Shown one piece after another: positions 32,385-38,300 of a stretch of 64,000 bases of DNA. A program made the translations under genes and the position numbers. How positions within the stretch are numbered: position 1 is the stretch's first letter; the number at the start of each line of letters is the position of its first letter. Below the pieces are notes generated by a model. That model was not told the origin of the DNA, did not search any database, and was given only the letters and a program-made list of their open reading frames with translations. The stretch comes from Macrostomum lignano (Eukaryota), in contig NIVC01000099.1 in assembly GCA_002269645.1 (NCBI GenBank), positions 186,001 through 250,000 on the forward strand, read 5' to 3'.

Positions 32385-35300
32385 ATGGCTCCCATCAATG
32401 GGATTAGCATTGTGCAGGGCGAGATCGCCTATCTGGTCAGCCACCTTAGGCGAGATCTGCGGCACAGCAAGCACACTGTGAGTCTCTGCCTGCCTTCTAC
32501 ATTTGTATCTGCCATGAATGCTTGATTTTTTTTAGTAACTTTGCAATGCAAATATCTGCTCACAACAACCAATACAGCTTCTCACAGTGAACTACCATTG
32601 GGGTAGCTTCTCACAGAGAATTAAGTAGCTTCTCACAGTGAACTACCATTGGGGTAGCTTCTCACAGAGAATTAAGTAGCTTCTCACAGTGAACTACCAT
32701 TGGGGTAGCTTCTCACAGAGAATTAAGTAGCTTCTCACAGTGAACTACCATTGGGGTAGCTTCTCACAGAGAATTAAGTAGCTTCTCACAGTGAACTACC
32801 ATTGGGGTAGCTTCTCACAGAGAATTAAGTAGCTTCTCACAGTGAACTACCATTGGGGTAGCTTCTCACAGAGAATTAAGTAGCTTCTCACAGTGAACTA
32901 CCATTGGGGTAGCTTCTCACAGAGAATTAAGTAGCTTCTCACAGTGAACTATCATTGGGGTAGCTTCTCACAGAGAACTCCCATTGGGGTAACTTCTCAC
33001 AGAGAACTTGGTAGCTTCTCACAGAGAACTACCATTGGGGTAACTTCTCACAGAGAACTGGGTAGCTTCTCACAGTGAACTACCATTGGGGTAGCTTCTC
33101 ACAGAGAATTAAGTAGCTTCTCACAGTGAACTATCATTGGGGTAGCTTCTCACAGAGAACTACCATTGGGGTAACTTCTCACAGAGAACTGGGTAGCTTC
33201 TCACAGTGAACTACCATTGGGGTAGCTTCTCACAGTGAACTGGTTAGCTTCTCACAGAGAACTACCATTGGAGTAACTTCTCACAGAGAACTACCATTGG
33301 GCTAGTTTCGCACAGAGAAATACCATTGGGGTAGCTTCTCACAGAGAAATACCATTGGGGTAGCTTCTCTCAGATAACTACCATTGGGGTGGCTTTTTAC
33401 AGTGAACTACCATTGGGGTGGCTTTTTACAGTGAACTACCATTGGGGTGGCTTTTTACAGTGAACTACCATTGGGGTGGCTTTTTACAGTGAACTACCAT
33501 TGGGGTGGCTTTTTACAGTGAACTACCATTGGGGTGGCTTTTTACAGTGAACTGCCATTGGGTAGTTCTTTCTCATACATAGATGAAAAATCACCTGTGT
33601 CACTTCTGAGTTCCGAAATTCACCCGGCTGTCACAAATAATCCGCCCCAATCCAGCACGATGACCAGGTGCACATGGAGAATCTATTCGAAGACTTCGCC
33701 GCGCTCAAGGACGCCCTCAATGCTGTTGAAAACCTGTCCGACTTGGACGCCGAGACATTCCTGTCCCCATTCCTGGAGGTCATCACGGCCAAGGCCACCA
33801 TGGGCCGCGTCACGGGCCTGGCGGTCACGTCCATCAATAAATTCCTGAGCTACGAGCTCATCAACGAGTCCACGCCGAATTTAACTGGCGTGATTGAGAT
33901 GATTGGCGTTGCCGTCACGCATGCCAATTTTCACGGGACGGATCCCGGCAGCAATGAGGCCGTTCTGGCCAGAATTCTACAGGTATGCTAGTTCTAATGG
34001 CTGCATGTATTGCGGCTTCTTTGCTGCAGTTTTACAGTCTCTTAGCTGTGGTATTGCAGCCTCTCTTAGCTGTGGTATTGCAGCATCTCTTAGCTGTGGT
34101 ATTGCAGCCTCTCTTAGCTGTGGTATTGCAGCATCTCTTAGCTGTGGTATTGCAGCCTCTCTTAGCTGTGGTATTGCAGCATCTCTTAGCTGTGGTATTG
34201 CAGCCTCTCTTAGCTGTGGTATTGCAGCATCTCTTAGCTGTGGTATTGCAGCATCTCTTAGCTGTGGTATTGCAGCCTCTCTTAGCTGTGGTATTGCAGC
34301 CTCTCTTAGCTGTGGTATTGCAGCCTCTCTTAGCTGTGGTATTGCAGCCTCTCTTAGCTGTGGTATTGCAGCCTCTCTTAGCTGTGGTATTGCAGCCTCT
34401 CTTAGCTGTGGTATTGCAGCCTCTCTTAGCTGTGGTATTGCAGCCTCTCTTAGCTGTGGTATTGCAGCCTCTCTTAGCTGTGGTATTGCAGCCTCTCTTA
34501 GCTGTGGTATTGCAGCCTCTCTTAGCTGTGGTATTGCAGCCTCTTAGCTGTGGTATTGCAGCATCTCTTAGCTGTGGTATTGCAGCCTCTCTTAGCTGTG
34601 GTATTGCAGCCTCTCTTAGCTGTGGTATTGCAGCCTCTCTTAGCTGTGGTATTGCAGCCTCTCTTAGCTGTGGTATTGCAGCATCTCTTAGCTGTGGTAT
34701 TGCAGCATCTCTTAGCTGTGGTATTGCAGCCTCTTTTAGCTGTGGTATTACAGCTTCTACTAGGTAATTGTCGCAGTCCACAGTCTCACCAGAAGCGTAT
34801 GAATTATCATTTCCAGGTGTTGCGCACCCTGCTCGTGATCCCGGTGGGCGCCCATCTGTCCAACGCTACCGTGTACGAAATTTTCAAATCCTGTTTGCAC
34901 CTGTGCTTCGAACGCGAGGTTACGGAACTGATGCGCAAAACAGCAGAATACCAGCTGATGGACATGGTGCAGCTGTTGTTTGCCCGCCTGCCGCAGCTCA
35001 AAGACGATTTGCTGACGCAGCAGAAACTCAAAGCGGCAAGACGGCAGCAGCAGCAGCAGGAAAAGCAGCCAGCAGAATCTGCTTCATCAAATGTGACCAC
35101 AGCAGCCGTCACCAATGCTGACAGTTCCGCGTCTGCTTCCGCTGCTACTGCCGAGCCCACAGCTTCGGAGAAAAAGCGGCAGGAGACGCACCATCAGCAG
35201 CAGCAACAGGTGCCCGCTTCGGACCAGTCCGTTCCAGACGGTGCCAGCGGTGGCGGCGTCAGCGGCGGCGGTGGCAGCGAATTTGATACGGGATCCACCC

Positions 35301-38300
35301 CATTCATTGCCAAGACGTTCTCCGAGTTGCACAAGGACTTTCAGGTTGTTTGTTTTATCATGTTAGGCCACATTTTACTCGTATCTTGGTAGCTTGCCAG
35401 CTTCCCAGATCCTCAGTTGCTTTGCCAGCCTCTCAGATCCTCAGTTGCTTTGCCAGCCTCCCAGATCCTCAGCTGCTTTGTCAGCCTCTCAGATCCTCAG
35501 TTGCTTTGCCAGCCTCCCAGATCCTCAGCTGCTTTGCCAGCCTCCCAGATCCTCAGTTGCTTTGCCAGCCTCCCAGATCATCAGTTGCTTTGCCAGCCTC
35601 CCAGATCATCAGTTGCTTTGCCAGCCTCCCAGATCATCAGTTGCTTTGCCAGCCTCCCAGATCCTCAGTTGCTTTGCCAGCCTCCCAGATCATCAGTTGC
35701 TTTGCCAGCCTCCCAGATCATCAGTTGCTTTGCCAGCCTCCCAGATCATCAGTTGCTTTGCCAGCCTCCCAGATCATCAGTTGCTGGGCCAGCCTCCCAG
35801 ATCCTCAGTTGCTTTGCCAGCCTCCCAGATCCTCAGTTGCTGGGCCAGCCTCCCAGATCCTCAGTTGCTTTGCCAGCCTCCCAGAGTGTCAGTTGCTTTG
35901 CCAGCCTCACAGAGTGTCAGTTGCTGGGCCAGCCTCCCAGATCCTCAGTTGCTTTGCCAGCCTCCCAGAGTGTCAGTTGCTGGGCCAGTCTCCCAAAGTG
36001 TCAGTTGTCGGGCCAGCCTCCCAGATGTTTAAAGCCCGCTTGTGTCTCATGCTGTCGTGACGCAGGATCGCCAGCAAGACTCGTGCTGCATTGAGATCGG
36101 GGAGCCCGCGCCAAAAGCTACGGCAGAGCTGTCCGCAGCTGACCAGGGCGAGGCAGCTGAAGAGGCCGCCGAATTTTCTGCCACTCTGGCGGCGTCTTCG
36201 CGTGACCGCACGGTGTCGCTGACGGAGCCGGCCGGGCAGGATCAGGTGGATGCGGCGGAGGAGTCGATTGTGGCGGCTCCGGAGGCTTCTCCAAGCGTGG
36301 ATGTTGCCGAGCAACCAGCTGCTACCATTTTCGAGACCGAGGCGGAGACGGAGGCGGAAGCGGAAGCAGAGGAATCTGGGGTATTGCAGCCTCTCTTAGC
36401 AGAGAAATCCGAGCAGCCAGGCGATCAACCGGCTAAGGATTATGTTAATCCTAAAGGGATCAGATTTACCGCAGGTAATTGGTATCACTTTTTAATTTGA
36501 AGTTAAACATTTTAATAATATTTTAACCCGTTTTTTTATCATTACCTGCGTGTCTTATCGGAATACCACAGAATCTGGCATGGAATGGCTGAATGCTGAT
36601 TCACGATCCCACAATACCGATCCCGAATCCTACAATGTTGATCCCGAATCCTACAATGTTGATCCCGAATCCTACAATGCTAATCCCGAATCCCTCAATG
36701 CTGATCCAGCATCTCACAATGCAAATCACGAGTCCAACAATGCAAATCCCGAATCCCACAATGCAGATCCCGACTTCCACAATGTTGATCCCGAATCCCT
36801 CAATGCTGATCCAGCATCTCACAATGCAGATCACGAGTCCAACAATGCAAATCCCGAATCCCACAATGCAGATCCCGAATCCCACAATGTTGATCCCGAA
36901 TTCCATAGTATCAATCCCGAATCCCACAATGTCGATCACGAATCCCACAATGCCGATCACGAATCCCACAATGCCGATCACGAATCCCACAATGCCGATC
37001 ACGAATCCCACAATGCCGATCACGAATCCCACAATGCCGATCACGAATCCTGAAAATCCTTCGCCTAACAGAGTCGTCAGACGCGGAAACGGCCGCTCCG
37101 CAGTCCGAGGACGTCTCCAACGCCGCCGCAGGTGCTGCTGGCCCCGCCGCCTCCTCGACTTTAGGCGTGGCGAACACCAAGCGGCAGCTGGGGCCGTACG
37201 GGCTGCTGAGCGTGCGCGAGATCTTCAAGCAGCTGATCGCCAACATGAACCCGCACGATCGGAGCAATACGGACGCCAAAATGGAGACTTGTTTGAATCT
37301 GCTGGCCCAAGCCTTTGAAGTTGCCGCCGATAGCTTAGAGAAATGTGACTGCCTGCTGGAGCTGGTGCGGAGCGATCTGTGCAAGAATCTGGTGTTTGTG
37401 AGTTGCGGGGCTGGGCTAACTGCTTGATTTACTATGCTTAGTGTGACAAGTCTGAGGGCTTGTGGGTTCCTACCGGCAAAATCCACGTGGAGTACAAAGG
37501 CTGCCGAATTCGCCTGCCCGCAGCTGCTTTACTTCAGCGGCACCTCCGTGTTCGCCGCCTCCCTCCGGCTCGGCTACCTGATCTTCAGCTCGCTTCGCTG
37601 GCACCTGAAGTTCCAGCTGGAGCTGTACCTGACCCGCCTGATGGAGATCGTCACCTCGGAGGGCAGCCGGGTGTCGTTTGACCACCGCGAGCTGGCTCTG
37701 GAATCGCTGGTACAACTCTGGCGAGTTCCCGGCTTCGTTGCCGAGGTCTACCTGAACTACGACTGCGACCTGTACTGCTCCAACCTATTCAAGGACATCA
37801 CCGAGCTGCTGTCCAAGAACGCCTTCAGCACCGGTGGCGGCATATTCAGCACGCACTTGTTGTCGCTGGACGCTCTGCTAACCGTCATTGACTGCATCGA
37901 AGCCCACTGCAACGCCGCTGCCGCAGTGTCTGCTACCAAAGCCTCCGCATCGCAGAAGCAGCCTCAGCAGCAACAGCAGCAAAGCCAGCAGCTGTCATTA
38001 ACGCAAGCTTCCCTGACTACTGGCTACCAGGCTGCGTCAGCTCAGGCCGTTGCGGCCGCCCCAGCCTCCACGAAATCGGCCATGTCATCGGCGATGATGT
38101 CACAAACATCGGTGGCCTCGGCGGACTCCTGCGACGTCAAGGAGCTGGCGCGCCGGCGCGAGCGCAAGAAGCTGCTGCAACAAGGCGCCGATTTGTTCAA
38201 CAGAAATCCGGCTAAGGGGCTGGCGTTTCTTGGCGAACACAAGCTGCTGTACCCCAGCTGTCCGGAGAGCGTGGCCGCCTTCCTGCGGGAGAATCCGAGC

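Follow-up and report, generated by a model that had tools for sequence, protein, structure and literature searches.

A single intronic minisatellite unit in a coding exon of Macrostomum lignano GBF1, a probable templated insertion

In fork stalling and template switching (FoSTeS), break-induced replication mediated by microhomology (MMBIR) and short-range template switching, a short stretch is copied from a template elsewhere on the same chromosome; polymerase-theta end joining leaves short inserts of 20-30 nt with microhomologies of 1-3 nt. Published accounts of MMBIR-type templated insertions (PMC8421209) and of short-range template switching (PMC7954356) describe copying from nearby templates, junction microhomology and flanking duplication, and a review deals with polymerase-theta-type templated inserts (PMC12426944). 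Here we analyze 64,000 nt of Macrostomum lignano DNA (contig NIVC01000099.1, positions 186,001 to 250,000; hereafter the window, in whose numbering all positions are given), in which a coding exon of the gene GBF1 contains one copy of the 24-bp unit of a minisatellite located in an upstream intron of the same gene. The exon copy resembles a templated insertion made by template switching and is a tidy case of a mutation type already known, not of a new mechanism. Less ordinary are its presumed donor, a minisatellite in an intron of the gene itself, and its product, which is fixed coding sequence. The features concerned are the following.

33656-33982, + strand: GBF1 exon A (DCB domain), donor CAG/GTATGC
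34007-34037, + strand: degenerate older unit or units, GTATTGCGGCTTCTTTGCTGCAG..., at the 5' edge of the 24-mer array, found by local alignment
34038-34758, + strand: minisatellite array of 24-bp units in the GBF1 intron that separates exon A from exon B, unit TGTGGTATTGCAGCCTCTCTTAGC, 30.1 copies
34817-35344, + strand: GBF1 exon B (DCB end and linker start); the A0A1I8HMZ2 donor lies 18 nt upstream, at 35326/35327
36066-36474, + strand: GBF1 exon C (acidic linker), ending in a conserved 12-residue stretch and joined to exon D
36376-36400, + strand: solo copy of the unit, C-TGGGGTATTGCAGCCTCTCTTAGC, in coding exon C, 25 nt in register with one mismatch

A search of the window with TGTGGTATTGCAGCCTCTCTTAGC, allowing up to three mismatches, returned a sole match outside the array, TGGGGTATTGCAGCCTCTCTTAGC at 36377-36400 (23/24). 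In-register alignment adds C36376 to give 25 nt with one mismatch (G36379 vs T), identity ending on both sides, and the exact identity between exon copy and array extends over 21 nt (36380-36400). The exon copy carries GCAGCC, the majority variant of the array, and is found on the same strand; 1619 nt separate it from the end of the array, and 2339 nt from the start. Its codons, GGG GTA TTG CAG CCT CTC TTA GCA, give GVLQPLLA, residues 425-432 of the database model A0A1I8HMZ2. The 24-mer unit found no match in 100 dinucleotide shuffles, and rough arithmetic (any rotation or strand, 33 units, about 38 kb of non-array sequence), assuming uniform base composition, puts the chance of a 23/24 match at about 1e-5. 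Among the 33 arrays of period 12-50 tested, only the 24-mer has a whole-unit solo copy outside the arrays (1/33), trivial 12-17-mers and one array edge being set aside. The array-exon match is real and not a product of chance. The first-pass annotation, which had considered a chance match very unlikely and had described a GBF1 intron array of about 30 copies with a 23/24 match at 36377-36400, two exons and 1.6-2.3 kb downstream, is borne out in these respects by the unit search (one mismatch), the shuffles, the 30.1 copies reported by Tandem Repeats Finder (TRF), the distances given above, and the mapping of A0A1I8HMZ2 together with exons A, B and C. Its placement of GVLQPLLA in the DCB-HUS linker likewise agrees with the Pfam assignment, in which HUS begins at residue 505.

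The + strand gene is M. lignano GBF1 (UniProt A0A1I8HMZ2), which matches the window at 100% with exons between 32385 and 49278. Pfam recognizes HUS at 505-653 (1.9e-25), Sec7 at 779-963 (1.4e-64) and a GBF1-like TPR_28 at 1635-1806 (3.7e-32); the protein thus has a Sec7 domain, an upstream HUS and a C-terminal GBF1-type TPR, and its homologues are named GBF1. The spliced exons A, B and C show 99% identity to an M. lignano protein and 40-52% identity to GBF1s of other phyla. The N-terminal 200 residues are 40-52% identical to GBF1 fragments annotated with DCB (PF16213), and the region from about residue 210 to about 455 is not alignable between phyla, as found for a DCB domain followed by a variable pre-HUS linker; GVLQPLLA falls inside this acidic, poorly conserved linker. 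The intron with the 24-mer array is A-B, and intron B-C, which holds a different 28-mer array, separates exon B from exon C, leaving the exon copy two exons downstream of its array. Two in-frame GT-AG solutions exist for intron B-C (35326-35345, 36034-36066), namely that of A0A1I8HMZ2, GA/GTTGCA...TTTAAAG/CC, and the alternative CAG/GTTGTT...GACGCAG/GA; they differ by 6 and 10 codons and may reflect alternative splicing. For exon C, the acceptor of the database model is about 30 nt farther upstream; the exon is spliced to exon D at aacag/AGTCG, about 37073.

The GVLQPLLA segment is coding, because the open reading frame (ORF) 36042-36500 is uninterrupted across it, A0A1I8HMZ2 includes it and joins it to exon D, and a conserved 10-residue motif follows 13 codons later in the same frame. 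This motif is kept in Bugula (INPKGIRF) and in the GBF1 homologues P0004 and P0006. A spliced query of exons C and D was identical to A0A1I8HMZ2 over 245/245 residues in the representative search. Of two frameshift-ridden M. lignano models, P0009 lends weak support to the spliced exon C-D junction alone, and P0008 is without the segment, an absence that we judge uninterpretable. The models P0001 and P0009 read ...NPKGSDLPQ... instead of the conserved ...NPKGIRFTA... (36460-36474 and about 37068-37075). The cause is a 1-nt frameshift at a AAAGGGATC run, which P0001 makes good with an acceptor placed 2 nt downstream. The shift most likely reflects a homopolymer error in the older long-read assembly and no biological difference.

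Codon usage provides a test of the direction of copying. GBF1 has a strong bias, with a GC content of 77% at third codon positions, CTG for 66% of Leu and GTG for 48% of Val. Within the segment, all codons but one of the eight are minority choices (GTA 3.6%, TTA 2.3%, CCT 5.6%, TTG 8%, GCA 9%, CTC 14%, GGG 19%). Scored in the manner of the codon adaptation index, as the mean ln(w) per 8-codon window from relative synonymous use within the 1815-codon GBF1 coding sequence (CDS), the 8-codon stretch that begins at 36378 has the lowest score in the entire CDS (-1.82, against a mean of -0.39 and an sd of 0.27; z about -5.3), the next independent locus scoring -1.31. No other window is as low, either among 1785 non-overlapping CDS windows or among 229 linker windows. 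Stop-free 24-mers from the GBF1 introns average -0.96, and 1.3-2.9% of them reach -1.82. Having the lowest codon adaptation of the whole CDS, the GVLQPLLA segment looks like non-coding DNA set in an exon and not like native coding sequence. At the protein level it forms a hydrophobic island (V, L, L, L) within a run of E, A, S, T, Q, D and P.

The exon sequence around the solo copy bears a second mark, a direct repeat that brackets the segment.

36365-36376, + strand: direct repeat copy 1, AGCAGAGGAATC, the presumed original target, whose last base C is common to the end of the array unit
36398-36409, + strand: direct repeat copy 2, AGCAGAGAAATC, which begins with the three bases, AGC, that also end the array unit
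36377-36409, + strand: inferred net insertion of 33 nt, comprising 21 nt templated by the array and the 12-nt duplicated target

The two 12-nt repeats are identical at 11/12 positions and offset by 33 nt. Repeats of this kind (12-mers with no more than one mismatch at an offset of 13-45 nt) occur at only two loci in the 4532 nt of GBF1 exons, and the other locus is a GGC-rich low-complexity run. Compared with the in-register array, the bases shared at the junctions are C on the left (1 nt, chance level) and AGC on the right (3 nt). Deletion of 36377-36409 leaves ...GAA GCA GAG GAA TCC GAG CAG..., that is EAEESEQ (E-A-E-E-S-E-Q-P-G-D), in frame. Judged from the sequence, the bracketing repeat and the array match probably together represent the footprint of a templated insertion with flanking duplication.

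We propose that the unit was probably copied from the intronic minisatellite into exon C, a direction favored because the segment is a codon-usage outlier and is bracketed by a 12-nt repeat with junction microhomology. According to this proposal, a growing 3' end (...GAGGAATC; ...GGAATC) would have quit its exon C template during replication or break repair and primed on the same-strand 24-mer array 1.6-2.3 kb upstream. There it would have copied roughly one unit, TG[T/G]GGTATTGCAGCCTCTCTTAGC, before returning through the AGC microhomology, 12 nt behind the point of departure, where synthesis would have resumed. The empty site before the insertion would have been ...GAGGAATCCGAGCAG..., and the outcome a 33-nt in-frame gain adding 11 residues to the disordered acidic DCB-HUS linker, where it would be tolerated. 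Two later substitutions would complete the present sequence: GAG GAA to GAG AAA in repeat copy 2, and T/G at 36379 unless the array consensus has drifted there. At the protein level, both of these proposed changes are common to the two gene copies considered below. A similar scar, not separable from that of a template switch, would result if a fragment of the array had been captured at a staggered break or if the event had been an RNA-templated variant. We infer the direction, the template-switch mechanism and the neutrality of the change alike; nothing in this analysis, which concerns sequence only, points to a function for either GVLQPLLA or the array, and the exon copy is presumably an old neutral mutational scar and not a working device.

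Several observations weigh against insertion from the array. The left microhomology amounts to just 1 nt, and the bracketing repeat sits in a stretch rich in GAG, GAA and GCA, in which short repeats are somewhat likelier than in the average exon. The codon test has a sample of eight codons, and the insertion is read from a single sequence. That the match is almost exactly one unit long follows automatically if the exon seeded the array, and an array of this family at some other place in the genome could have been the source. Finally, the array would have to date back at least to the split of the gene copies, yet its consensus continues to agree with the exon at 23/24 positions, a degree of conservation compatible with the approximately 2% divergence between copies.

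The age of the event is indicated by a second M. lignano GBF1 copy, A0A1I8HHI2 (P0001), which has GLLQPLLP in place of GVLQPLLA, with 2/8 residues changed. This copy reads ESGLLQPLLPEKS, with the E-K-S of repeat copy 2, in the longer context ...VEESGLLQPLLPEKSKQPGD..., and the segment difference of 2/8 between the copies is similar to that of the surrounding linker. M. lignano is a recent polyploid, and the sequenced line has three paralogous copies that are about 2% apart in single-nucleotide polymorphisms with heavy indel differences (PMC10733133). Since A0A1I8HHI2 already carries the segment, with Gly at the first codon and E-K-S after it, the insertion would be older than the divergence of the gene copies, and the segment is not lineage-recent. 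In exon C (36108-36160) the window has one 16-residue repeat, (A/V)PK(A/S)TAELSAA(H/D)QGEA, where A0A1I8HHI2 has three in tandem; the copies also differ in this exon by a 48-nt tandem duplication. Close homologues in the X-masked search and the search of 1.84 billion representatives were M. lignano entries only (A0A1I8HMZ2, HHI2, FD33, FAQ4), two of them the frameshift-ridden models P0008 and P0009. Neither A0A1I8HHI2 nor the ORF of exon C had a record when looked up exactly, and metagenome scans for the 21-mer and the linker peptide gave no matches.

The same match could have arisen in the opposite direction, a native coding piece of 24-25 nt from exon C having entered the upstream intron, either as a templated insertion or through the capture of a fragment or circle, with later amplification to 30 copies. 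Every array needs a seed, the similarity comprises exactly one full unit as such an origin requires, the segment is old and present in the second gene copy, and the array core is homogeneous and possibly young. A seed of this kind would, however, coincidentally be the most codon-atypical 8 of 1815 codons and coincidentally be bracketed by one of just two 12-nt repeats in 4.5 kb of exons; the exon flanks are without similarity at the array edges, the 5' edge of the array has a degenerate older unit, and none of the 32 other arrays has a source-like solo copy in the window. Native codon usage and freedom from insertion scars, which mark the source of an exon-derived satellite, are not what the exon segment presents, and we consider this direction unlikely. 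The first-pass annotation had offered both directions; of these, insertion of a satellite unit into the exon is favored by the codon outlier and the bracketing repeat, seeding of the intron by an exonic 24-mer is disfavored, and the small DNA circle it suggested is supported by nothing in the analysis.

A source outside the gene, in the form of a dispersed satellite or transposon-borne 24-mer family that seeded the exon copy and the array independently, would make their proximity incidental. Families of 28-mers and 40-mers each occupy three sites in the window, about 15% of the M. lignano genome consists of simple and tandem repeats (PMC5730564), and a retrotransposon RNase H fragment is present at about 60.0-60.9 kb. 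Against such a source, the 24-mer family occurs at just these two places in the 64 kb, both sites lie 1.6 kb apart on the same strand of one gene, the exon copy has the array's majority variant, and the exon site is without poly(A) or transposon sequence. An independent origin of this sort is distinctly improbable. Still less can be said for a third explanation, that GTATTGCAGCCTCTCTTAG is the remnant of an ancestral satellite-bearing intron in exon C that is now read through. Its 19-nt core does start with GTAT and end in a pyrimidine tract and TAG, and the array units likewise resemble 5' and 3' splice sites. But 19 nt is not a multiple of 3, and removal of GTATTGCAGCCTCTCTTAG breaks the frame to the conserved 10-residue motif, whereas an exonised or retained intron is a GT...AG segment whose removal keeps the frame; the bracketing 12-nt repeat is also left unexplained, making this explanation very improbable. 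As for a resemblance that arose by chance, or by convergence on an RNA or protein motif with a function, the pyrimidine-rich, splice-site-like content of the unit is all that speaks for it; the shuffle control effectively refutes it, and the rough estimate and the 21 nt of exact identity also count against it.

Returning to the array proposed as donor, TRF describes 34038-34758 as a period of 24 with 97% matches and 0 indels, so that it is a minisatellite in having many head-to-tail copies of high identity. The search with TGTGGTATTGCAGCCTCTCTTAGC recovered 28 array units, of which 19 are perfect, 8 have GCAGCA and 1 has CTTTT. The GCAGCA units produce a C/A alternation at the 5' end that suggests a 48-bp higher-order step; one unit is 22 nt long (34527-34548), and the last units are degenerate. 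The degenerate stretch at 34007-34037 aligns locally to the unit with a score of 22 (shuffle mean 11.5, p=0.0035), and no significant similarity to the unit was found in the first 24 nt of the intron or in the 58-nt 3' flank (right flank p=0.83). The idea that the array extends to the 5' splice site was dropped, as significant unit-likeness is confined to 34007-34037, and therefore no claim is made that the array created the intron. The string ACAGTCTC occurs at the left boundary of the array (34033-34040) and again about 20 nt beyond its right end (34780-34787). The unit includes a CUCUCUU pyrimidine motif and the splice-site-like strings GGTATTG, TTGCAG and CTCTTAG; binding of a pyrimidine-tract protein is conceivable, and we take this to be a resemblance of motif only. 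For the titration of RNA-binding proteins by the array, which the first-pass annotation had suggested, the sequence analysis gave no evidence.

The 24-mer array is an ordinary member of the genome's very heavy intronic minisatellite load. TRF returned 78 rows for the window (1-64000), with 39.5% of bases in tandem arrays and 34 arrays of period 12 or more; the published figure for simple and tandem repeats, about 15% genome-wide (PMC5730564), is far below this. Introns have close to one array each, and the units of almost all arrays are unrelated to one another. An exception is a 28-mer family, GCCAGCCTCCCAGA...TCAGTTGCT (GCCAGCCTCCCAGAxxxTCAGTTGCT), found in three GBF1 introns (35394-36026, 38448-38891 and 46809-47594, all on the + strand) in arrays that are 78-81% identical to each other. 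Comparison of their flanks revealed no similarity beyond the array limits, and the possibility that these arrays belong to a larger mobile element was rejected, as flanking sequence is not shared. With this family in three GBF1 introns and the 40-mer family described below at three sites, array sequences clearly move about locally in this region; arrays serve as local donors elsewhere in the window, which fits the direction from array to exon. Variant units at the end of the first 28-mer array (CAGAGTGTCAG...) resemble the unit of the third. Direct repeats flanking whole arrays average 7.3 nt, against 6.4 nt when permuted, and reach at least 10 nt in 3/34 arrays (about 1% expected), a slight excess that is confounded by degenerate edge units.

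Other repeats in the window include a 40-mer family at 10330-11028 (+), 15524-15732 (-) and 22893-23035 (-), 88-93% identical, with two of its sites inside the introns of a CUB-domain gene, whose CUB-like exons lie at about 14.6-23.7 kb (+). At 16358-16373, CCTTCTGCACTCATTG matches exactly, over 16 nt, a unit junction of the 21-mer array 16658-17276, from which it lies 285 nt upstream in the same orientation. It may be another solo patch derived from an array, or else a seed; chance would give about 0.4 such 15-mers. A 135-nt sequence with 76% identity occurs at 10200-10331 and 20586-20722 (inverted) and adjoins the starts of the 40-mer (10330) and 82-mer (20722) arrays; this may represent a shared element, with arrays forming at its edge. 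Another dispersed repeat, about 320 bp long (28242-28559 and 53789-54099, inverted; 81% identity) is possibly a short interspersed element, in which ARAGORN found no tRNA and Rfam no known RNA; Rfam and tRNA scans of the whole window likewise gave no matches. An interstitial telomere-type repeat (TTAGGG)n, written TAGGGT, is present in 6.8 copies at 20400-20440. The ORF at 60018-60900, with an RNase H-like motif (...HSDSQAALRAL...IPGHAGFLGNERADLLAKAG...), looks like a fragment of a non-LTR retrotransposon. Two further genes are PQ-loop/cystinosin-like (about 52.8-56.1 kb) and intermediate-filament-like (141-1400, at the 5' end of the window).

The case alone changes nothing about GBF1 function or known repair mechanisms. 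Its value would be as a clean, datable-looking example of non-coding tandem-repeat DNA turned into protein through a short templated insertion, with a direction that can be read from the sequence itself in the codon-usage dip and the flanking duplication. The first-pass annotation had raised the possibility that intronic satellites supply new protein sequence; this is supported for the one case described here, with the qualification that the addition is probably 11 residues and not 8. Where introns are rich in arrays, such events could steadily supply indels to disordered linkers, and they could add to the indel-dominated divergence between the M. lignano subgenomes (PMC10733133). The paired test of codon dip and flanking repeat is applicable genome-wide and would tell an anecdote from a pattern. 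A broader proposal is that M. lignano has an unusually active local copy-paste of minisatellite units within one transcription unit, with the pre-mRNA or the excised intron as a conceivable template. Its basis is that the GBF1 28-mer is in three introns and the 24-mer in one intron and one exon, in the same orientation and without common flanks, and we hold it to be quite unlikely; if true, the process would explain the extreme minisatellite load of the genome (39.5% of the window) and would regularly feed satellite peptides into disordered regions.

Among known systems, FoSTeS/MMBIR shares with the GBF1 locus the copying of a short stretch from a nearby template on the same chromosome (24/25 nt in register, 1.6 kb upstream on the same strand) and a displaced return with flanking duplication (the 12-nt repeat, 11/12). 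The microhomology that marks such switches is present at both GBF1 junctions (C and AGC) but short, and on the left it is at chance level. The GBF1 template, at 1.6-2.3 kb, is farther away than in typical short-range switches and nearer than the templates of complex rearrangements. A further difference is that the event would have used a tandem array as template and yielded an in-frame, fixed coding insertion. The short insert and microhomologies of 1-3 nt also recall polymerase-theta end joining or fragment capture; however, theta inserts usually copy within tens of bases of the break, and a 12-nt duplication is not their usual mark. Insertion mediated by a long interspersed nuclear element (LINE) or templated by RNA has similar traits in the 12-nt flanking repeat, in a donor from the same transcript and orientation, and in the fragment of a reverse-transcriptase-bearing element within the window. 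A LINE-type event by target-primed reverse transcription is nevertheless unlikely, as the GBF1 insert has no poly(A) and the target AGCAGAGGAATC is not A/T-rich; typical retrocopies are also far longer than this insert. Coding minisatellites (variable number tandem repeats), finally, resemble GBF1 in that repeat-derived sequence becomes protein in a disordered region, and the three 16-residue repeats of the second gene copy lie in the same exon; unlike these, the GBF1 segment is a single unit whose source array would be in a different part of the gene, an intron two exons away.

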